Notes: generated from the letters alone by a model not told the origin. Shown: positions 18,767 through 31,058, numbered from the stretch's first letter. The stretch is DNA of 64,000 nt from Zygnema circumcarinatum SAG 698-1b (GCA_037447605.1 CM074809.1:3338689-3402688); one strand, 5' to 3'. Program-made: numbers and translations.

Positions 18767-19682
18767 TAATGCCAACTAATTTTCCCTTCTTCCTTTTCTG
18801 CCCCGGGCCACAATGCACAAAGGCAGGCCCCAACAAATGCTATCCATCCATCCAGCCGTTAAAGTCCACCATTCGACTTTCCAAGGGAGTGCGCGCACCC
18901 ACGTCCACAGATCCGTACAGAACCGGTTCGAGATCCACTGCTGCCGTACGGAGGAGGTTCTCAAACGTCGCGAGAGAGAACCGCAGAGGCTCTATGCGAG
19001 ACCCGTTCCGCGACATAGAACGGCGCGTCGTTAAACTGTAACGGACGTTGCAAAAAGAATCTTGAAAAGATGAAAGTCGCCAAAGTCCTGAAGTTGCGGC
19101 AACTGGATAACGGCCGTCCAGGGGAACAGGGCAACCAAACACAGAATCCGTACCTTGCATCTGACGTCCCCACGCTCGTCCCGTCTAAACTTCGTACGGG
19201 GGAGACGATTTGCTATTCTGCAAGGTACTGTTTCTTTCCTGCCAGTGTCCGGCGGTTTCCTGGCGAAGGAAGTTGCAAGGGAAGGCCCGCCCGCTTCAAG
19301 AGGAGGAGAGCCTTTCTTTGGCAGCCATGGCGGCGTGAGGGGCAGCTTGGAGCCGGATTCGGCTCAGGAAGGAGGCGCATTGACGTCGAAGAGGGATTCT
19401 CTTGGTTTTCCTGGTGGTCTGTTCACTCTTTGAAGCGGGCCTTTGAGGGTGGCGCTCGCTCTCTCGGCCTCTCGCTCTAGTTTTCGGCCGGGAGACGATG
19501 CACGTCTGGTTTTCTGAGGAAATTGCATGCTTCTTTGAAACAGAGATAGGACTTTTTTTTCTGTAGGGCTTTGTGGGAGGAACAGGGGGAGGAGGATCGA
19601 AGAGGTGGCTGCTTTGGAGTGAGCAGACAGGGAAGTTGCAGAGGAGGAAGTGAGGAAAGGAAGGTTATAAGTGAATACAAGC

Positions 19683-22069
19683 ATGGCGCTGACTTCTCTA
19701 CCGAGATCTGATTCAGAAATTCGGCGCAGTCTTTCCAGTATACCAGAGGCGGAAAACGAGGATGAGTATGGCAATGTTCTGAGTCGTAGGTATCAACGTG
19801 GCGATAGAAAACACGTTCGTTTTTTCGAAGTAAACTCCAAAGGCGAGAGAGTGTACAGTTCACCAAGACAAACAAACGACAGATTTTCTGAACCAGAGGA
19901 GTGTAGCTTGACGCGCCAGTCTACCATAAGCCGAACTACAGCTTCCTATGATGAGCAAGAGGCGGAACAACATCTATATAATCAACATCACGGGATTTCT
20001 CTCTCAATTTCTCCTCCACCCAAGCCGCCAGGAGAGCAGAGATTTCCCGCCCGACAGCTAACATCCATCTTTCAGTCATCTCCGCAAAACTCAAGTCCCG
20101 AAACGACCCCTGCAAGAAACGTGCATGCCGAGGGAGGAATGAAATCTCCAGTGGCGCAGTCAGAGGGATGGTACACTCTGGAGTTCGGAACAGCAGGAAC
20201 GCAAACATTCCGCATGCTTTTCCTCGATGAACGGGGCAAAGAGGTGTCGCCTTGGCATGACATTCCCTTGTATTCTACAGATGGTTGCCTCAATTTTGTG
20301 TGCAAAACTCCAAGATTTTCGTGGGCAGAGTATGAACCAGCGCGAGCAGAGCCTTCTACTCCTCTCAAGCTGAAGACGAGACGTGGAGCTCCTTTGCACT
20401 ATGCTCAAAATGCACCATGGAATCTGGGTATGCTGCCACGAACTTGGGCGGATCCGGAATTAAAAAATGAGTGCTATGGAGGGCTTTCTTATAGAAGTGG
20501 GCCAATAGAAGTGGTGGAAGTTGGGTCGAAGATAGCTTGGACCGGAGACGTTTACTCTGTGAAGGCCCTTGCAGCATTTGCAATGGTTGATCCCTCAGCC
20601 CGCCTATCTTGGATAGTTATCGCTATTGATGCGAGAGATCCATTGGCTAAAGTTTTGGAAACAGCAGGTGATGTGGAGAAGAAGCTAGGCACAACATTGC
20701 GAGAAGTTCGAGAATGGTTGCGGACCTGCCGCTGCGTCCAAGAAGGTAGGACTTCTCTTCTTATTATAGATAAAGCTTTTCTTGCAACTATTTCTTTTTG
20801 AATGGTAGTCACAGGAAGCTGCATTCTGGATACCGTTTGTGCCGTCCAGAAGGAGGAGAACTCTGTGTTTTTGTGGAAAGTTTTTTCATACTAGCATTCG
20901 TCCTAAAATTATGCACCCAATTCTACCTCTTCTACGCAGGTGATCGTAAGAATGTCTTTGGATTGAACGAACGTGCTGTTGGACAACTCACAGTTGCAAG
21001 AATGGTTGCTGAGACACATGCCAGCTGGCAGCTCTTCATAGACAACAACTCGCCAAAGAAAGCATCCGACTTGCCACTCGTCAGGCCTGCAAATCCGGCC
21101 ACTTATGAAAGCTATTGGTCGATGTACCATTACCCTGACTTCCTGAGCCCCGTACAGATCGAGCTTTGTGATCCAAGCCAAGAGCTTCTCAGGTCGGTAA
21201 CGGACTGCTCGGTTGTTTCCTCCGAATCCAGTGAAGCTGAGGGGTTTTGGTCCTCTGAAAGCTCGGAAGAGCTTGTTATGAGCAGAGGCATGGCGACTCG
21301 TGAACAGCAATTACAAGCGCAGCATTTGCGGGCTCAGAATGCACAGGACATGCAGCGATTCTATGCTTCATCAAATCTGTTTCCCCCGCAGCACAACGAG
21401 CAGAATTTCCCTATGAGACTTCCGGAACCACCAAATTACAGGCAAGGTGTCATGCCGGAATTGCGGCAGCATTCATCTAGAGTCAACCATCTGACAGCAG
21501 TGCCCTCTAGTCTGCAAAATTCTCAACTTCAGTCACAGAATACAGCAGCCGGCCGCTCCACAGCTTTCTCATACGATAGATATGCTCACGATAACAGGGA
21601 ATTTGCTCAGTTTTACGAAGAGCCATCGCGGAGTCCTGTCGCTGCAGCACCTTCACCTACTGGAAGAACCCGCTCAGATGTGTATGTGGCGGCTTCTGCC
21701 TCAAAAATGCATCGAACGACTCCTGGTAGTCAGTCATGGGATGGTCAGGAAGGTCAATGGCAATCCCCTCGATTGGCTGCTCGGACGACTCAATGGAGCC
21801 CTAGATGCGGAAGGGAAGAGGCGGAGTTACCCCATAAAGGAGGGACTTTTCCTCCCTATGCACATAGAAGCTATGGAGATTCTCCGGGTCACGAGGGGTT
21901 GAAATCGCCTAGGGGCCACATATTGGAGGAGTTGCCACCCAGTTTTGACAAGATTGCCTTCCAATTGGATAAGACTGAGGAGATGCACGCTCGCTTTAAC
22001 TCTCGGCTTGCAGCAACAAAGGTTTTGTTGGAACGGTTGAGGCTGCATGCCGAGTCTGACGGGAGCTGA
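19683..22069 (+). CDS. Family I (plastid-type) inorganic pyrophosphatase-like protein, predicted inactive, with long disordered termini (intron 20746-20939)
   Basis: GKEVSPWHDIPL, WNLGMLPRTWADP, VKALAAFAMVD, VFGLNERA and ETHASW match the PPase fold. The DxDxxD motif is replaced by RSGPIE. Confidence 0.85.
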
Positions 22070-22817
22070 GTTTTCGGCTGCTGGAGATTATGTGGAAAGG
22101 CCAAAGACGAATTGACCGTTGAAGCTGGAGAAAGAGGGAGCTCTCTTTTACTGGTTCTTGTACTGTAAACTCGTTAAAACTGTGGAAGTTTTGAACTATG
22201 GGCTGGGAATGCCAGGAATCTCTCCTGTGCAGTTCATACGTCCTCTTTGCAGGTCCGTTCAAAGCATAGCTTAATATTGACTGGAGGTCGAGTAGCCTTT
22301 GGAATTAGTCCCCTGCAGGTATATTCATTGTCGACAGACTAGCTCCTTCTTTTGTTGTGATCACTTAATATGCTCCAGTCTGCTCCTTCCGGAACACTCC
22401 TTATTACTTGTATTTTAGGCAGATCACGCTTATTAGAGATATTCTTATTCGTTAATTTCTTATTCGTTGTTTTCTTATTCGTTGTTATAGACAGGGATAA
22501 TGCTTCGTGGCAGGCTGCGCTCCTCATCGCTTGAGGGGGGAAGCTGCCTTTGTACTCATTCATGTGGTTAGGTTCAGATAGGGCAAGGGATTAATCACAA
22601 CGGCTTCTTCATTTCACCTTTTCAGTTCACATCTGCCCTCTTGTAACACCTTGAGAATGGAAGCTTCATGCTTGGCAGTATGCTGTGTGTGACAGGGAGA
22701 AGAAAGGGGGGGAGGTATTTGCTTCAATTTTTTTCTTCATAGGGAGAGTATAATAAAACACATGGAACAGTGCAGACAGAAGGGGAGGGGAGACAGGCAG
22801 AGGGAGAGGGAGATTCT

Positions 22818-24589
22818 TCAGCCACGAATGCGCAAACAGAAGCCAGAACCCACATCAAGCAAAGAAATAACAGTCTTTTGTGAAAAACCCCTCACTTTCA
22901 GCCACATGTTAGATAATAAAGAAGCACAGAAGCCACTCCCATCACTTTGAATTATCTGATGGAAAAAAGTGAAGTACCACAAGAGGTCATCAAAGCAGTG
23001 GCACTTGTCTCTCCCTCCATGCTCAGCGACATGCCATTCCTGGCACAATATTCGAATTGCTTCTATGGTTGAGAGAGCGCTCTCAATGACCCCCTTTGTG
23101 TGGTACCGCCAATAGGACGTCTGAACCCCGTCGTCCAACCGGACGTGCTGAACCCCTTGAAGCTCGGGAAGGGATAAAATCCGAGCAGTTCCTTTCCACT
23201 GCAAACAACCAGCCCAAGTTTGATTCAAATTAGAAGTAGAATTCCTGGAGTCCTTAGGCTCTAGAGAACTAATGTAAGCATGTGAACCGTATGCATGGCC
23301 CCTCGACATTGTATTCGTAAACTTCAGTCGTTTGTAGTCTTGAAGCTAGAAATGGATGCCCTCGGTTGACCGCTTACCTTGGACTCCACCACAACCACTC
23401 GGCGAATTTTTTCAATATCGATAGATTGAACGGGAACGGATGACTGGGAGGGAAAGAGGAGGAGAGTGCTGGAGGGGTCAAAGGAAGGCAGGGCGTCCGT
23501 TAACGCATGGATTCGGACTGAATTTGGAGCAAGCAGGGCAGCATGGATGCCTGTGCTCATGCTGCGCCGCTCATTAGGATGCAAAATGATGTCCACTTCA
23601 AATGGAAGAGTCAACTGAGGAGTTTCATTCAAAGGAGTAAGAACCTGCAGCCAGGATAACACTTGGCAAGTTTCAGACGATTTTCCAGACTTACAGCGAA
23701 GAGTAGATGGTGGAGACCTGAGTACTCTGGCTGATCCCTACTTTAACTTCACACCTTCTTCTAACAGAAATAAAAAAAAGAGAATCTGCTAGAGCAAGTA
23801 TTAATCTTGCTCCGAGGGTTTTCGGGTAAACAACTATTAAAAAACCGAAACCGGGATTGGTCCTATCTTCCGAAGCGCTTTTGCATCAATTGATGCCATG
23901 CTTACAGAAAGGATTAAATGCACACTTGTTGCATGTCGCAGCAATCCTTTTTGCTAGTTGTCGTAAATGAGTAGATGCTACGGCAACCACTAAACAGGAG
24001 TATTTGTGACGCCTAGTAGGGGGGACTGAAAGTGAAACAAAGCTGAAACCTTGCTATTGATGAATAAAAAGAAAACGCAAAGAAAAAATCGAACAAAGTG
24101 TTTCACGAAACCACTGCGACTTGGCTGCATCGTGATTGAAAAGCATGCGCTAAGCAAGGGTTCCTTCCTATCAACTAGCTCCCTTACTCCCAGAAAAGAA
24201 AACCCTTTCGACCCTTCTAATTTTCCTTTCTATCAAAAAAGTAGACGATCTCCCTCGCACCCCTTCCCTCCCTTCCCCTTCACCTGCAGGCAGTCGTAAC
24301 AGAAGTAATGCCGCGACTTCGTGCACAATGGACAGCCAGTGCGGCCGGAGAGCGCTTCTAAGGAAGATTGAGAGGAGAGAATTAGGTCAGAGGGGAGAGA
24401 AGGGAGCGCCCAAGAGGGCGCCCTCCAGGCGATGCAGAGGCGGCCGTCCTCCGTCCTCGTGCGCGTGTTCTTGGGCGCGTGCTGCCCCGTGTAGCTCTCC
24501 GCGCTGAACAGGCTCTGCGCCTCCTCCATGGCGAACAGAGCCAGCGGGTCCCCTTCCAGGGAAAGCGAAGCTAACGCTAGCTCCGCCAT
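22818..24589 (-). CDS. DTW-domain protein, DTWD1-like tRNA aminocarboxypropyltransferase (at least 3 exons; 3' end uncertain)
   Basis: CPLCTKSRHYFCYDC, DIILHPNERRSMSTGIHA, LLLFPS, VVVESK/W, TSYWRY and LSTIEAI. Confidence 0.8.
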
Positions 24590-25499
24590 GGCTGCCTCCC
24601 TTAGGGTCTGAGCTCGGCTCTAAAGAAATTTTAGGGTTGCCTGTGGGGCTTCCATTTCTTCATCCTGGAGTCATTGCCCAATGGCGCTTTGTCACGTGTA
24701 AAAATATATGTTCGGTGCAGCGTTTCCCGTTGTGTGGAAGAAGGAACCGGAAACAGTTCAACCGCATAAGCTGGCATGGAACGGTGTTTACATGTCTCTA
24801 GAAACTAACAACTCTCCAAAGGTCGTCCAGTAAAACTGCGGAAAACTGTAACGATAACTTGTCGACGCTGTACAGCATGGATCGGTGCCCAATTAGGGGC
24901 AGCTTCCTGGAAATCTCTTGGAAGTTTTCCCTCAACTGCTCCCAGTCTCCAGAAGGCAAGCTTTGCACGGAGCTAGGACATGGCGACTCTCGGCTTGGTC
25001 TGCTCATGGGGGGCGGTTCTGGGAGAGCTTAGAGGGCAGTTTAAAGGCAGGCAGAGGTGCCACTTAGAGAGGCATCTCGAGGCTTATGCATGTCCGGTAG
25101 AGTTGATCAGAAAAAGTGACCTGAACACGAAGGAAGGTAAGGAGGGAGACCTCCTGTTCGGTGTCTCGCACTTGCAGCATTCAACTGAAATTTGAGAAGT
25201 TAAAGCGTATTTAGAAAAAAATCATTATGATGATTTTGGTGCAAAGGTCAGAGGGAAACTAGTTGCTCAATATTGAGAAGCGCTTGACCTGAACTTGCCA
25301 ACAAAAGGACGTTTCCTCTACGCTTTCTTTTGCAGGTACTTCTTGGTTCCCTTGCACCTGCTTATCTTCTTCTATCAGAAATTTGCGTTCCTTTCACACA
25401 TAAGTTCCTCTCTTTCTACCTTTTAGTGACTTTACTTCGTAATGTTGTTGCTCTCTCTCTTCTCCCTGTCCAGGCTTAAGAGCTCAGAAGGACACAGCC

Positions 25500-26310
25500 A
25501 TGGCCGCAGCTTCAAATAATTTCGCAGCACTTGCAGAAGGAATCCTTCCTCCTTCAGGCCGCGGCGCGGCTGCAGAAACTCCAATGCCTACTTCGTTTGC
25601 TCCGCCTGTAAAGTCATACGACATTCACGTGTATTTTCAGCACACCGATGCTCAGCAGACTGCATTCGCGAGAAGATTGCGAGAAGATGTCATGAAGGTG
25701 TGCGGCGTTCCTGCAGCGTTAAGTATTGCAGGAATGTGGTTGATAGTCAATCGACGAAAATGGAACTTACTTAGCCTTTATGTAGCGGAGCAGGTTGAGT
25801 CGCATGGCGGATAGCTCTTTTGGAGGATACTGTTTTGCATGGACAGGGTAGCTTTGGGTGCATGGAGAGTGAAAGGAAACGGCATTTGCGGAAGCTGTTG
25901 CCCGTAACTGTCCCTTGGCCAAGCACCGCTGTGATTTGCAGCGCTGGCTGAAGACGTAAATTCTGCAGGAGGAGGTCCTGCAACGTTGCACTCATCTAAC
26001 ATCGAGAGGCTGCTTGCGTTACTGTGTGCAGAACTTCCCGCATTTGCAGACCGGCCGGTTCCATGAGAAGCCTATCGGCCCGCATCCTGTGGGCATGTTT
26101 GAAACCGATTTGCAGACTCCTGCACAGTTTGCGGAGTTTGTCCCGTGGATTGGCATGAGGAGAGGCGCCCTCTCCGTGCTGCTGCATCCAAACACTGGTG
26201 ATCTTGTAGCAGATCATATGGATAACTCTGCCTGGTTTGGTCACAAACTGGATTTGAATGTCGAGTTCTTGAAATGGTTCGTGCAGATGCAGGAAAGTCA
26301 GAGTCGTTAG
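25500..26310 (+). CDS. DOPA 4,5-dioxygenase family protein (fungal/bacterial DodA type, not LigB type); intron 25698-26031
   Basis: SYDIHVYF, GRFHEKPIGPHPVGMFE, LSVLLHPNTGD..ADH...AWFGHKLDLN. Confidence 0.88.
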
Positions 26311-27059
26311 CGTTGACGACAGGGGTGGTTGTAAATAGAAGAAGCATGGCAGTGATGTACCAGAGCAGGTTTCTGAGTCCCTTCAAGGCCAATGAAGCAC
26401 CTTGGCATGTTTGTTGGAAGTGGCTCGCTCGCTTGAAAACATGCCAACATAAGAAAGCTTGTTCTCCGAACATATTTCTATAACATCACCACTCTGTACC
26501 TTCCTTTTGAGGCATTAAACCAAAAAGCATGCATGTAGGTTTGCCTACGCAGCCCGAAGCTGCTTGTCCTGCAGTGGTTTTGAAGCTCACGCCAATGCTC
26601 AAATCATGGTCGACCAAATACATAGAAATTTGCGGTGGTTTTTGCAGCTACTTTTAGCTTAACAAGCTTTGGGAAGACGTGTTTAGTCCATCCGCTGCTA
26701 GAGTGTCTGCTGATCAAGCGCACAGGGTGGGAAGTGCCCTCACAGAAAAGGGAAGGCTCTCTCCAGTCCACTGCAAAAACCTGCAGCCCTGGATGAGGGT
26801 CCTTCCACGGCCCTCGTTCTCCGCTCGGCAGCAACCGCCCTCCTAGTGCTTACCTCATATCCCCTTCGGTCCATGATTCAGCGTTGACTCGAACAATAGA
26901 CACTCCCTCATTGCAATGTTTTTGTGCCTTTCCCGGCCGGCGTTGGCGGCACGTTTTAGGCGATCTCGGAGCATTTCCTGCGCATGGCGCAAAGCAGAAG
27001 CCTCAAATGTGACGCAATGCTCTCAGCCAAATGAACTGTGAAATGCAAAGAGAGTTCGC

Positions 27060-28090
27060 AGGGACGCCACGTGAGCATGTGCGCGCACTGCCGCTGCCAC
27101 ACACAACCGCTCATGCCCATGCCCATGGACGTGCCCATTCCCGTCATAGGCCTACTCATGTTCATGTTTCATGCTCAATGAGTCACATGCGGTCGCTCCT
27201 CCGCGCCCGAATACGACAAGAGGGTGCGAGGAAAAATCTCATTGACAAAATACGCTCGGCCACGTGGCATTCCGCGCTGTTCCTATCCACGATGTCCGCC
27301 AACGAGGCGCCACGTGACCAGCCTGCCACGCTGGCGAAGAAGCCGCCCGCCCGCAAGTGCGGACGGACAGACGGTTCAAGCGCAAAAATTGAGCCGACCG
27401 TACGGTTGTTCGGTTGTCAACCACGTCTCCGCCTCCCCAGATTCTACCTCCAGAGGGCGCTTCCACCCGCCGACCAAAAGTTGAACCGCGCCCACACCAT
27501 CATATGGGCGCCATACGGCTGCCGCCCTTCGCTGTGCGGTTAGCGCCTCTCTGAGGTGGCGCTTGTGTGGTCCCTGGCCTACTCGGCCCTCCCTGCCAGG
27601 TGGCGCGCCCTCTGACTGGAACCACGGTCGAAGCTCGCGAGGTCGCAGGTGCGAATGCCCACTTGCAGTCAACGCGCCTTTTTGTCGTCTTGTACACTGG
27701 AGCCCAAAGACGCACATGCTCCGAGCCAGTGGCGCGCTGCCACGTGGTCGCGGCCGCCCGCTGGCTCGCGCCTTTGACTATGGACTTGCCCGTGCTTCCC
27801 GAAAGACTCTTGCCGCCCGCCGGGATCGCGCCATCCTGGCAAGCTCCGGCCGCTGACATGAGGACAAAACAGTTCGTACGTACACACTATTGGGAATCCA
27901 AAAGGCGGCGCAAGGGACGAAGCTTCGGAGAATTCCAGGATCGCGTCAACGGCGATTGGCGGCTGCCACTCACACGTGTCAGGATCTGAGCCCGTGGAGG
28001 CCGCGGACGGGAATTGTTTGTCGTTTTCGCCGACCGTGGTCCGGTGGGGCCGGTGGAGATGTCTCGGGGGCCCTGAGTAGGCGCCACGTG
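27060..28090. promoter_or_regulatory. GC-rich intergenic block with clustered G-box/ABRE-like CACGTG motifs
   Basis: Six CACGTG in about 1 kb, five of them as GCCACGTG. Could instead be transposon subterminal repeats. Confidence 0.4.
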
Positions 28091-28523
28091 TCGCCGGGCG
28101 GCAAGTGCAAGCGTAATTGGACAGCCTGGTAAAATTTTTGGCCCGGGTACGGGCAGCCTGGACGCAACGAATTTTGTTCAGGGCGAAGTAATTATCTGAG
28201 CGGCGGCAGTTTCATCGCTTCCTAAAAACTTTTCGGCTTCCCCGTTTTGCACGCAATGCCGCCCAAAACCTATTTCCATATTTGGTCTACACCTTTTTCA
28301 AGCAGTGGAAAAAAGTTTCTCATGCTTCTTGCGGCCTCGTACTTGCCAGTTAAACCGACGCAGGAAAATCCAAAACTGTGAATTTGGCGCCTACCAACAG
28401 GCCGAAATAGCTGGCGCACGGCCTCGTCAATCGGAAGTCTGCACACGAACAACGCGGCGCTATTATTGGCTGTTACGGGGACCGCGCCAGCTGGACCAAC
28501 CCGTGCCCCGATATGCTCGGACT

Positions 28524-28707
28524 GTACGAACGCCACGCTGTCGTTTCCGAATTATGGGAGCCATACCGTCCACTTCGCTTTTTCAGCCCAGTCCGTACTT
28601 TCTGCGTACGGTACCTGTACTATATGTACGGACTTTCCCCCTTGAGCTGTAGTTCAGATTCCGCTTAAGCGTACGGCAGAATCCCTGACCGTATAGGACG
28701 CGTACGG
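28524..28707. promoter_or_regulatory. Cluster of GTAC / CCGTAC motifs (SBP-box-type core)
   Basis: Eight GTAC in about 185 bp, 400 bp upstream of the ATG at 29107. Confidence 0.5.
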
Positions 28708-29106
28708 CAGAGGTAGGCGCACACCCACATCGCCAGCTTGCGCGAGAGAGGGCTGGAACCGTTTTCCTGTAAGGGAGAGAGAGAGAGAGAGTGAGCTTGC
28801 GGGGACGGAGTTGTGGCAGAGGCAGAGCGAGAGATTCAGCGGCGAGGATTGCTGAAGGAGGGCGTCAATACGCGCGTCAGAACATAATTTCTGGTTGTTA
28901 TTCTGACGGGAGGATCTGATTGAGACAGCAGCTGGGAGGGACACTTGCAGGGGATGCGGGAGAGGGAGCGGGAGAGGGAGAGGGAGAGGGAGAGGGAGAG
29001 AGGGAGAGGCTGTGGTCGTGAAAGGTGAAACCTGCTGCCTCTCTGCCTGCTCGCTCGTCCTTTTGGTTGTCTCCTTCTTCCCTTTCTTGCTGCGGCGGCA
29101 GCGGCC

Positions 29107-31058
29107 ATGGGCGTGAGCTTGAACTCTGACTCCGACTCCTGCAGCAATGGCTACCGCTTTGTTCTCCACGGAGAGTCTGACTCGTACATGAGCAGTCTAA
29201 GCGCTAGTTTCACTACCACAAGCTCCGACGAGCTCTCTCCCAGAGCTCGCATAGACGTAGCAACAGGAGCCCCTGTTTGGCAGAGGAGGCCTGTCAGTGC
29301 GTTCAAGCATCAGCATGTTTCTATTCAGCTGAAAGCTCCTCCAACAAGCAATCCAGGAACAGGGCTCAGTATTGTAGAATCAGGGCAGCCAGGCTCCGCT
29401 GATTTCGCTGTAAAGTTTTACGACAGTAAGGGGAGAGGAGTATCGCCTCTTCATCACATTCCTCTTTATGCGGGGAGAGACTTGTGGACTATGGTCTGTA
29501 CAACGCCCAAAGACAGCTGGATAGAGGTAGAGGTCGGAGAGAGTGTTGGAGGAGATGGAGGAGAAGGGGAGGGAGGGGCAGAGTGGGAAGAAGAGGGTGG
29601 GTTAGAGGAAGAGGAGGAGGTAGAAGCAGGACGGAGAGCAAGTAATGAGTTTCAGCAGAAGGGGTGTGGCGCCGGCCCTTTGAAACTTAGACTGAATAAC
29701 GGGACACCTTCCCACTACAGTGAGAATTCTCTATGGAATATCGGCATGCTGCCGCAGACGTGGGCCAATCCGGAGCTTCCAAATTTAGAATATGGCGGTC
29801 TACAATACGACGGGAGGCCGCTGGAAGCCATTGATTTAGGTTCAAAGCCAGGGAGAGTCGGAGAAGTATATGCTGTAAAGCCTTTGGCGGCATTCGCAGT
29901 GATCGATTGGGATAAAGAGAAGCTAAAGCAGCAGCTTTCGTGGAAAATCGTGTGCATTAGAGCTGATGATTTGAGTGCGGTGGCATTGGATGATGTCGGA
30001 GATGTAAATAGACGGATGCCGGGAGTACTGGAGGAGATAAGAGAGTGGCTTCGAATATGCCGATGTTTGCAACAAGGTGAGAGACCTGTCTCCGATGTGC
30101 TTTCAGAAAGGTTGCTGTAGAGAGGGATGTGGTACGGAAAAGCAATGGTAACTTTCCGCGGGAGTCCGCTTTGGAAAAAGCTACACGTTTTGGGCAAGTA
30201 TTGTTTAACCTGTTGTAAAGGGATGTACATCTGGTGTTGTGTTGTGGAATGAGCTAGACTTTGGTGCTATGTTAAAGTCGCTCCCAGTTCCTATTGATCG
30301 TGATGATCTTACAAATCGGTGTGATGCTGCCTCTTCCTTCTGCAGATGACCGCATGTGTGTTTTTGGCCTTAACGAAAGAGCAGCCAACCGGGAAGGAGC
30401 CCTCCGAGTGGTAATGGAAGCCCATGCCAGCTGGCAGCGTCTGGTTGAACAGAGACCCTCCCTTCTCGTGAAGTCGTCTCCTTTCTTCGGAGTTGAAGGC
30501 CGCAGGGGGGAGGTAGGGGGGAGCTCTCCTCTACCTCCATCCTCTCCCTCTAGCCAGAGCCTCTTGTGGCAGCGAATCAGTGGCCCCCATTTCAGGGAGA
30601 CTGGAGGGGTCATTATGCTGAGCGATCCGAAGAAGTTGCTGGCCAGAAGGCAGAGAAGGCCTTGGAGTGAGAGTGTGTGTGATTATGAGAGCTTAGACAC
30701 GGAATCGCAAGGGCAGGGAAGTGTCTCTACCAACGGGACTGTGAGCAGGAGATTGGGACTCAAAGCATTGCGATCATCCCCTCTCTTTGCACATCCTGCA
30801 TACATTGAACCGAGGATGGAAGAGTTGATGATCTCCTTTGAAGGGGATGACTTGGATGAACTGAGCTTGAGAACTTCCGGCCTCTGCTTTCCAGTGCCCG
30901 GCCGGAGGGTGCCCTTGAAGTTGGAGCCGGTCGACACACCGAGGAGAAAATGGCCGGGAGGTAGCCGTAAGGGGAGTAGGGAACTAGGATTAGCCTTAGG
31001 ATGCGGCTCCGCCACTATGTATGAGATGGGTCACGGGTTACAAGAGCTGCAGAGATGA
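29107..31058 (+). CDS. Second pyrophosphatase-like paralog, predicted inactive (intron 30077-30345)
   Basis: GRGVSPLHHIPL, WNIGMLPQTWANP, VKPLAAFAVID, SWKIV and VFGLNERA. The phase-1 intron is in the same position as in paralog 1. Confidence 0.85.

Follow-up and report, generated by a model that had tools for sequence, protein, structure and literature searches.

A 64,000-nucleotide (nt) stretch of the Zygnema circumcarinatum SAG 698-1b genome (GCA_037447605.1, CM074809.1:3338689-3402688; "the window," with positions counted from its first letter) carries two paralogous genes, here called copy A and copy B, whose products resemble soluble inorganic pyrophosphatases (PPases). Soluble PPases are housekeeping enzymes with one of the most highly conserved active sites known. 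Conjugating green algae are the sister lineage of land plants. We suggest, with a probability that we put at about 0.55, that A and B belong to a large, catalytically dead family with the eukaryote-type family I PPase fold, and that this family serves as a non-catalytic scaffold with disordered, motif-bearing tails.

Both copies retain the pyrophosphatase fold

Copy A (19683-22069, 730 codons) and copy B (29107-31058, 560 codons) both lie on the plus strand. Their first exons matched the Pfam family PF00719 with 46.1 bits (copy A) and 51.7 bits (copy B), and the gathering cutoff is 23.5. Solved eukaryote-type family I PPases were matched at 32 to 36% identity, with E values of 2.6e-28 to 4.9e-28 for copy A and 4e-23 for copy B. 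The best match in the PDB was the trypanosome acidocalcisomal enzyme, followed by the yeast, human, and Toxoplasma enzymes. The two copies are 36% identical to each other across 258 residues.

We modeled the exon 1 domain parts of A and B with AlphaFold2 (AF2), using an alignment of 61 family sequences as input. The copy A model had a predicted local distance difference test score (pLDDT) of 95.9 and a predicted template modeling score (pTM) of 0.91. The copy B model had a pLDDT of 88.2 and a pTM of 0.83, and its low confidence was confined to a 47-residue acidic insertion. In Foldseek comparisons, copy A superimposed on human PPA1 (6c45) with a template modeling (TM) score of 0.91 and a root mean square deviation (rmsd) of 1.3 Å, and on the yeast enzyme (1wgi) with a TM score of 0.90; copy B gave TM scores of 0.69 to 0.71 to the Toxoplasma and human PPases. 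The nearest shape cluster in the ESM Atlas was a streptophyte "putative inorganic diphosphatase" (TM score, 0.94), and a feature search of the ESM Atlas returned generic PPase clusters only. By these models, the PPase fold is retained in both copies. This agrees with the original prediction, made from the DNA sequence alone, that both keep a family I scaffold, and the fold is of the eukaryote type.

Most catalytic residues are replaced

Yeast residue numbers were mapped onto A and B through HMMER alignments to the yeast and Trypanosoma cruzi chains and through a MAFFT alignment with canonical proteins. We scored 13 catalytic positions, as follows.

E48: copy A, K; copy B, T
K56: copy A, E; copy B, E
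E58: copy A, E (kept); copy B, E (kept)
R78: copy A, L, or H; copy B, S, or H
Y93: copy A, L; copy B, I
D115: copy A, R; copy B, D (kept)
D117: copy A, G; copy B, R
D120: copy A, E; copy B, E
D147: copy A, D (kept); copy B, D (kept)
D152: copy A, S; copy B, S
K154: copy A, I; copy B, K (kept)
Y192: copy A, C; copy B, C
K193: copy A, R; copy B, R

Copy A thus keeps 2 of the 13 residues (E58 and D147), and copy B keeps 4 (E58, D115, D147, and K154). The Mg-binding signature D-x-D-x-x-D (D115, D117, and D120) is lost, having become R-S-G-P-I-E in A and D-G-R-P-L-E in B. The replacements that had been read by eye at E48 (K/T), K56 (E), Y93 (L/I), the RSGPIE/DGRPLE segment, D152 (S), and Y192-K193 (C-R) all match our alignments. 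A proposed change of R78 to H depends on the alignment. It appears in the HMMER alignment to yeast, but the T. cruzi and gap-free MAFFT alignments place L (A) or S (B) at this position and the His one residue later. Arg is absent from position 78 of A and B under every alignment used. Six substitutions had been listed as identical in the two copies. They are indeed shared, with R78H again subject to the alignment, but they are not peculiar to the pair. Most are the commonest residues of the whole family, and therefore they look inherited.

In PPases, Mg ions are held by the acidic residues and the phosphates by K56, R78, Y192, and K193, and D117 contributes to activation of the nucleophilic water. 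Because the Mg-holding and phosphate-holding residues have been lost jointly, hydrolysis of pyrophosphate (PPi) by A or B is, judging from sequence, very unlikely.

Both genes are intact and under purifying selection

The features of the two genes are as follows, with the evidence for them in parentheses.

19683-20745, plus strand: copy A exon 1, from its ATG at 19683 (sequence)
19683-20153, plus strand: copy A N-terminal extension, 157 codons, with abundant S/P/Q and charged residues (open reading frame [ORF] listing, composition)
20154-20745, plus strand: copy A pyrophosphatase-like domain, exon 1 part (PF00719, E = 6e-12; PDB, E = 4.9e-28; AF2; Foldseek)
20298-20312, plus strand: copy A VCKTP
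20493-20510, plus strand: copy A RSGPIE, replacing DxDxxD
20601-20618, plus strand: copy A RLSWIV
20715-20735, plus strand: copy A WLRTCRC
20746-20939, plus strand: copy A intron, 194 nt, GT..AG, phase 1 (sequence and contig joint in run X2)
20940-22069, plus strand: copy A exon 2, ending in TGA (sequence)
20940-21046, plus strand: start of copy A exon 2, C-terminal helices of the domain, …VFGLNERA…AETHASWQ… (alignment to canonical PPases and to the family consensus FGLNER…AHASWQ)
21047-22069, plus strand: copy A tail, 340 codons plus TGA, low complexity (composition, BLASTP against family tails)
29107-30076, plus strand: copy B exon 1, from its ATG at 29107 (sequence)
29107-29343, plus strand: copy B N-terminal extension, 79 codons, with SDSDSCS and PVWQRRPV blocks in common with the ortholog P0013 (alignment of exon 1 with P0013 from residue 1)
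29344-30076, plus strand: copy B pyrophosphatase-like domain, exon 1 part (PF00719, E = 1.1e-13; AF2; Foldseek)
29494-29508, plus strand: copy B VCTTP
29536-29676, plus strand: copy B acidic loop insertion, 47 codons
29809-29826, plus strand: copy B DGRPLE
30046-30066, plus strand: copy B WLRICRC
30077-30345, plus strand: copy B intron, 269 nt, GT..AG, phase 1 (sequence; the P0013 transcript is continuous across this point)
30346-31058, plus strand: copy B exon 2, with TGA at 31056-31058 (sequence)
30348-30452, plus strand: copy B domain helices encoded by exon 2
30747-30869, plus strand: copy B conserved tail block, …LKALRSSPxFAHPAYIEPRxEELxISFE… (near-identical in P0013)

The reading frames are open over all 730 codons of A and 560 codons of B, and the canonical splice sites are kept. 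The copy A ORF opens at 19671, with its first ATG at 19683 and a TGA stop at 22067-22069. Both introns are in phase 1 and split the same codon, after W-L-R-x-C-R-C-x-Q and before D-R-x-x-V-F-G-L-N-E-R-A.

Read evidence in Zygnema covers copy A and the neighboring DTW-domain gene (19200-25199). Run X2 is RNA-like, as contig joints in the DTW gene fall at canonical splice sites and depth is zero in the intergenic interval 22200-22599. In this run, coverage of copy A extends from about 19.3 to 22.16 kb, with contigs collinear to 22160. The joint 20743>20938, which skips 194 nt with GT..AG ends (cut +2), is the predicted copy A intron. Copy A is transcribed and spliced. Contig depth in X2 was 82 to 345 over the DTW gene and 5 to 12 over copy A.

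We then compared each copy with an ortholog in terms of the proportions of nonsynonymous (pN) and synonymous (pS) differences. Exon 1 of A and P0001 differ with a pN of 0.295 and a pS of 0.792 (206 codons). For B and P0013, the values are 0.254 and 0.800 in exon 1 (298 codons) and 0.316 and 0.797 in exon 2, which is mostly tail (198 codons, 54% identity). Because a pS of 0.79 to 0.80 exceeds the Jukes-Cantor limit, a dN/dS ratio is not computable, and pN is set against pS instead. Synonymous sites are saturated while nonsynonymous sites are not, and this indicates long-term constraint, that is, purifying selection, on both genes, including the tail of copy B. The P0013 protein is a complete, 553-residue ortholog of copy B encoded on two spliced 2.6-kb contigs that are continuous across the intron site. 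It has both the N-terminal blocks and the conserved tail block of copy B.

A and B are members of a large family of degenerate domains

Word searches turned up just a few relatives, and a broader profile search followed. It gave 2,778 matches at an E value of ≤1e-3 and 262 at ≤1e-30. Among the best 150 profile hits, the number of catalytic residues kept was bimodal, at either 0 to 5 or 10 to 13 of 13, the higher range being that of the canonical enzymes. There were 68 full-length domains without the D-x-D-P-x-D pattern. The family alignment comprises 61 sequences including A and B, with about 60 cluster representatives at 50% clustering. E48 and K56 are both kept in five proteins (seven domains), which were judged to be another kind of degenerate PPase and left out, as were the fragments P0088 and P0144. 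P0063 and P0132, which fall on the canonical side in the tree, are still included in the set.

In an unrooted IQ-TREE phylogeny, a branch with support of 98/93 separates 59 dead-domain rows, including A and B, from 14 canonical PPases. Copy A groups with P0001 (100/94). Copy B groups with P0013 (100/98) within an 11-row clade (99/98) that does not contain copy A. Because A and B sit in separate, well-supported subclades, each with a closer ortholog elsewhere, the tree indicates that they are old paralogs. The same two facts rule out a recent tandem duplication as the origin of the pair.

A family signature can be written as V-C-x-T-P, E58, D120E, a small residue at 152 followed by W-K, and W-L-R-x-C-x-C, and it is present in A and B with the exception of I154 in A. 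In V-C-x-T-P, the C is found in 55, the T in 52, and the P in 57 of 61 members. The other frequencies are 48/61 for E58, 39/61 for His at 78 or 79, 43/61 for D120E, 35/61 for S152, 58/61 for W153, 51/61 for K154, 38/60 for C192, and 36/61 for C194. VCxTP, SW, and WLRxCRC had been described as common to both copies. We located VCKTP and VCTTP, WLRTCRC and WLRICRC, and the SW within RLSWIV of copy A.

The intron position is also informative. Many transcript-derived members continue into the FGLNER…AHASWQ helices after the C-x-C segment, and gene calls on genomic contigs stop right after the G that follows C-x-C. On two such contigs, L001 and L002, the coding sequence picks up again in the following exon as it does in A and B, which makes the phase 1 intron a feature of the family.

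All eight members with a named source come from conjugating green algae, six from Mesotaenium endlicherianum and two from Closterium NIES-64 and NIES-54, where they are annotated "unnamed protein product." Searches of the literature, including full texts and supplements, returned neither a description of a dead family among the family I PPases nor the Mesotaenium gene identifiers. The intact frames, the spliced copy A RNA, the low pN relative to pS, and a family of about 60 representatives split from canonical enzymes bear out the proposal of a conserved dead-enzyme family rather than decaying pseudogenes.

Several observations concern the wider set of sequences. The contig L002 (Logan SRR9302961, 7.1 kb), which carries P0005 with the same intron position, also has adjoining patatin-like and Cpn60/TCP1 fragments. 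Because its G+C content is only 38%, the family may extend to organisms with a base composition far from that of the Zygnema genome (about 49% G+C). P0017, from an NCBI source (18.7-kb contig), is a protein of 5,113 residues in which 20 degenerate PPase-like domains stand in tandem; the catalytic residues kept per domain number only 1 to 4 of 13, and the C-x-C of the family is absent from all 20. It ranked as the top profile match because the scores of its 20 domains sum. P0019, P0021, P0052, and P0053 have two to four tandem, apparently intact PPase domains (10 to 13 of 13 residues kept) and may be polyproteins or fused gene models.

Conservation falls on structural columns and on short blocks in the tails

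The most conserved columns of the family are structural, namely W188, L189, S-P-W-H-D-I-P, G131, P-Q-T-W, and W153. The mean entropy of the 13 former catalytic columns is 2.32, and that of all 197 columns is 2.23 (permutation P = 0.61). We therefore rejected a conserved new pocket at the former active site as a family-wide feature. This pattern indicates that selection holds the fold and a few pocket residues, with no single defined new site.

The extensions are abundant in S, P, Q, and charged residues. S, P, and Q together make up 0.31 of the copy A N-terminal extension, and disorder-promoting residues make up 0.71 of it. A Pfam scan gave no match outside the PPase domain in copy A. Long S/P/Q-rich or acidic extensions had been described from the DNA sequence alone. 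Many transcript-derived members have tails of several hundred to 1,878 residues, and the tails of the family have only short blocks in common. In a BLASTP comparison of the copy A tail with family tails, P0030 was matched with an E value of 1.2e-11, ending in …QLDxTxxMHARFNSRLAxTKxLLxRL… (21953-22051). The final 33 residues of copy A, …QLDKTEEMHARFNSRLAATKVLLERLRLHA, recur in P0030, which is a member of the copy B subclade, and so this block is older than the A/B split. Another C-terminal block, …ERWGGGEGGL(K/R)R…(L/I)RRS(L/I)SF…, is common to one subclade (P0057, P0069, P0082, P0083, and P0101) and looks like a phosphorylation site for a basophilic kinase. Short conserved blocks separated by sequence that varies freely are consistent with linear motifs in disordered tails.

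We favor a scaffold over a conserved pocket because the conserved columns are structural, the catalytic columns are average, and the tails are long with short shared blocks. In this scenario, the PPase domain would not hydrolyze PPi; as a stable module without catalytic function, it would support binding or oligomerization. The module would present disordered N- and C-terminal extensions, and the short motifs in them, which are conserved within lineages, would make specific contacts. On this view, the protein is predicted to be an adaptor or scaffold rather than a sensor organized around a single conserved new pocket.

Four points weigh against this scenario. First, E58, E120, K154, C192, and S152 are moderately conserved at the frequencies given above, and in many members the former pocket may therefore retain some capacity for binding. 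Second, the fold models comprise the exon 1 domain without the exon 2 helices. Third, the taxonomic range is based on the eight named members. Fourth, a word search with the copy A tail (ORF residues 49 to 423; candidates of 233 to 740 amino acids) gave no match at an E value of ≤0.01, although this is not proof of absence.

The cysteine pair is not a hallmark of the family

One alternative is that the family is a redox or metal sensor, in which the C-x-C at positions 192 and 194, together with His 78/79, E58, and E120, forms a controlling site. The positions themselves speak for it, since Y192 and K193 of yeast PPase contact phosphate and the cysteines stand in place of Y192 and of the residue that follows K193. 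A, B, P0001, and P0002 have the pair, as do 20 further representatives. Its carriers fall in several subclades, and it is therefore probably ancestral. However, both cysteines are found in just 24 of 61 members. The residue between them may be H, L, R, K, or others, and only three of the 61 sequences (A, B, and P0058) read exactly C-R-C. The copy B ortholog P0013 has C-H-N at this site and thus lacks the second cysteine, and P0005 is without the first. C192 ranks only 72nd of the 197 columns in conservation. The pair also did not co-vary with H79, E58, E120, S152, K154, or D115 among the 61 members (Fisher P = 0.39 to 0.73), and on this ground the idea of a Cys2-His site was rejected.

We conclude that the "new CRC motif" does not hold as a mark of the family. 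The proposal of a ligand-sensing, redox, or metal site as a family property fares no better, because the cysteines do not co-vary with the other pocket residues and the catalytic columns are of average conservation. These results speak against a site for ligand, metal, or redox chemistry shared across the family; the statement applies to the family as a whole and not to the cysteine-keeping subset. We regard the sensor explanation as unlikely. It is also improbable that, in A, B, and other members with both cysteines, the former active-site pocket (E58, His 78/79, E120, S152, K154, and C192-x-C194) functions as a redox or metal switch.

Comparison with known systems and remaining alternatives

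The eukaryote-type family I PPases (yeast Ipp1, human PPA1, and the plant plastid PPa6 type; PF00719) share the fold of A and B, with E values of about 1e-28, 32 to 36% identity, and TM scores of up to 0.91. However, 9 to 11 of the 13 catalytic residues of these enzymes are replaced in A and B, and DxDxxD is gone. The dead family also adds long, putatively disordered N- and C-terminal extensions and lies on the opposite side of the 98/93 branch.

The trypanosomatid acidocalcisomal PPase is catalytically active, and what it carries in addition to the PPase domain is a folded domain at the N terminus rather than a disordered tail. This acidocalcisomal or vacuolar soluble PPase (5cux, 5cuu, and 5c5v) is the best PDB match, joins a PPase domain to extra sequence, and has in common with A and B a G-x-P-x-x-Y turn before position 78. 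Unlike A and B, it has the full catalytic set (D-N-D-P-I-D and Y-K).

Eukaryotic family I PPases are dimers. A dead domain might therefore pair with a canonical soluble PPase and tune or relocate the active enzyme, and the rmsd of 1.3 Å between the copy A model and human PPA1 is compatible with such pairing. There are plant precedents: PDX1.2 (10.1101/717082) and beta-amylase9 (PMC12046210) are reported to be pseudoenzymes that regulate active paralogs. Like A and B, these are dead copies of metabolic enzymes held by selection. However, each of them is encoded by one gene and has an identified active partner, whereas no partner is known for A and B, whose family is large, divergent, and tail-bearing. 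A simple regulator of one enzyme would not need dozens of divergent members whose tails differ so much. The regulator explanation is unlikely.

Residual or altered enzyme activity, either slow PPi hydrolysis or action on another phosphoanhydride or phosphoester substrate, is decidedly improbable. Copy B does keep E58, D115, D147, and K154, D120E is a conservative change, and single conservative variants of yeast PPase have been crystallized according to PDB titles (2ik6 is D120E). However, D117, K56, R78, Y93, D152, Y192, and K193 are gone together, DxDxxD is missing from all family members used, and the former catalytic positions vary freely.

Finally, it is barely credible that A and B are decaying, functionless duplicates of a pyrophosphatase gene, as the loss of most catalytic residues alone might suggest, because this is already contradicted by the open frames of 730 and 560 codons (by our own arithmetic, 375 stop-free codons in random sequence have a probability of about 1e-8), the canonical splice sites, the spliced copy A RNA, the pN far below a saturated pS, and the orthologs in other species.

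A whole family of dead PPases with very long tails, whose named members are all from conjugating green algae, is under selection. Such a family offers a clean natural experiment on non-catalytic uses of the PPase fold and a candidate set of lineage-specific scaffold proteins of zygnematophytes. The Zygnema genome paper reports that Zygnematophyceae-specific orthogroups are enriched for the Gene Ontology (GO) term "pyrophosphatase activity" (PMC11096116); the dead family is not described there. Genes for dead PPases may account for part of this enrichment. If they do, the annotation would be misleading, because the members are very probably without PPase activity.

Gene neighborhood

Copies A and B flank two genes outside the PPase family, as follows.

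22649-24567, minus strand: DTW-domain gene (PF03942 fragments, E = 5e-4 and 8e-5; spliced joints)
25500-26310, plus strand: DOPA 4,5-dioxygenase-family gene, at least two exons (PF08883, E = 1.3e-25 at 26014-26310 and E = 1e-4 at 25500-25814)

The coordinates and Pfam matches agree with the arrangement first proposed, a pair of paralogs with a common intron position on either side of the DTW and DOPA-dioxygenase genes. The DTW gene has two introns, with joints 23198>23378 and 23642>24282 in runs X1 and X2.

Between the dioxygenase gene and copy B, the interval 26500-29100 is G+C rich (0.54 to 0.56) and contains several ORFs of 100 to 170 codons on both strands; the two ORFs tested gave no Pfam match. 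A (GGGAGA)x7 microsatellite lies at 28958-29000, about 110 to 150 nt upstream of the copy B start codon, and may be a GA-rich promoter or 5' untranslated region element.

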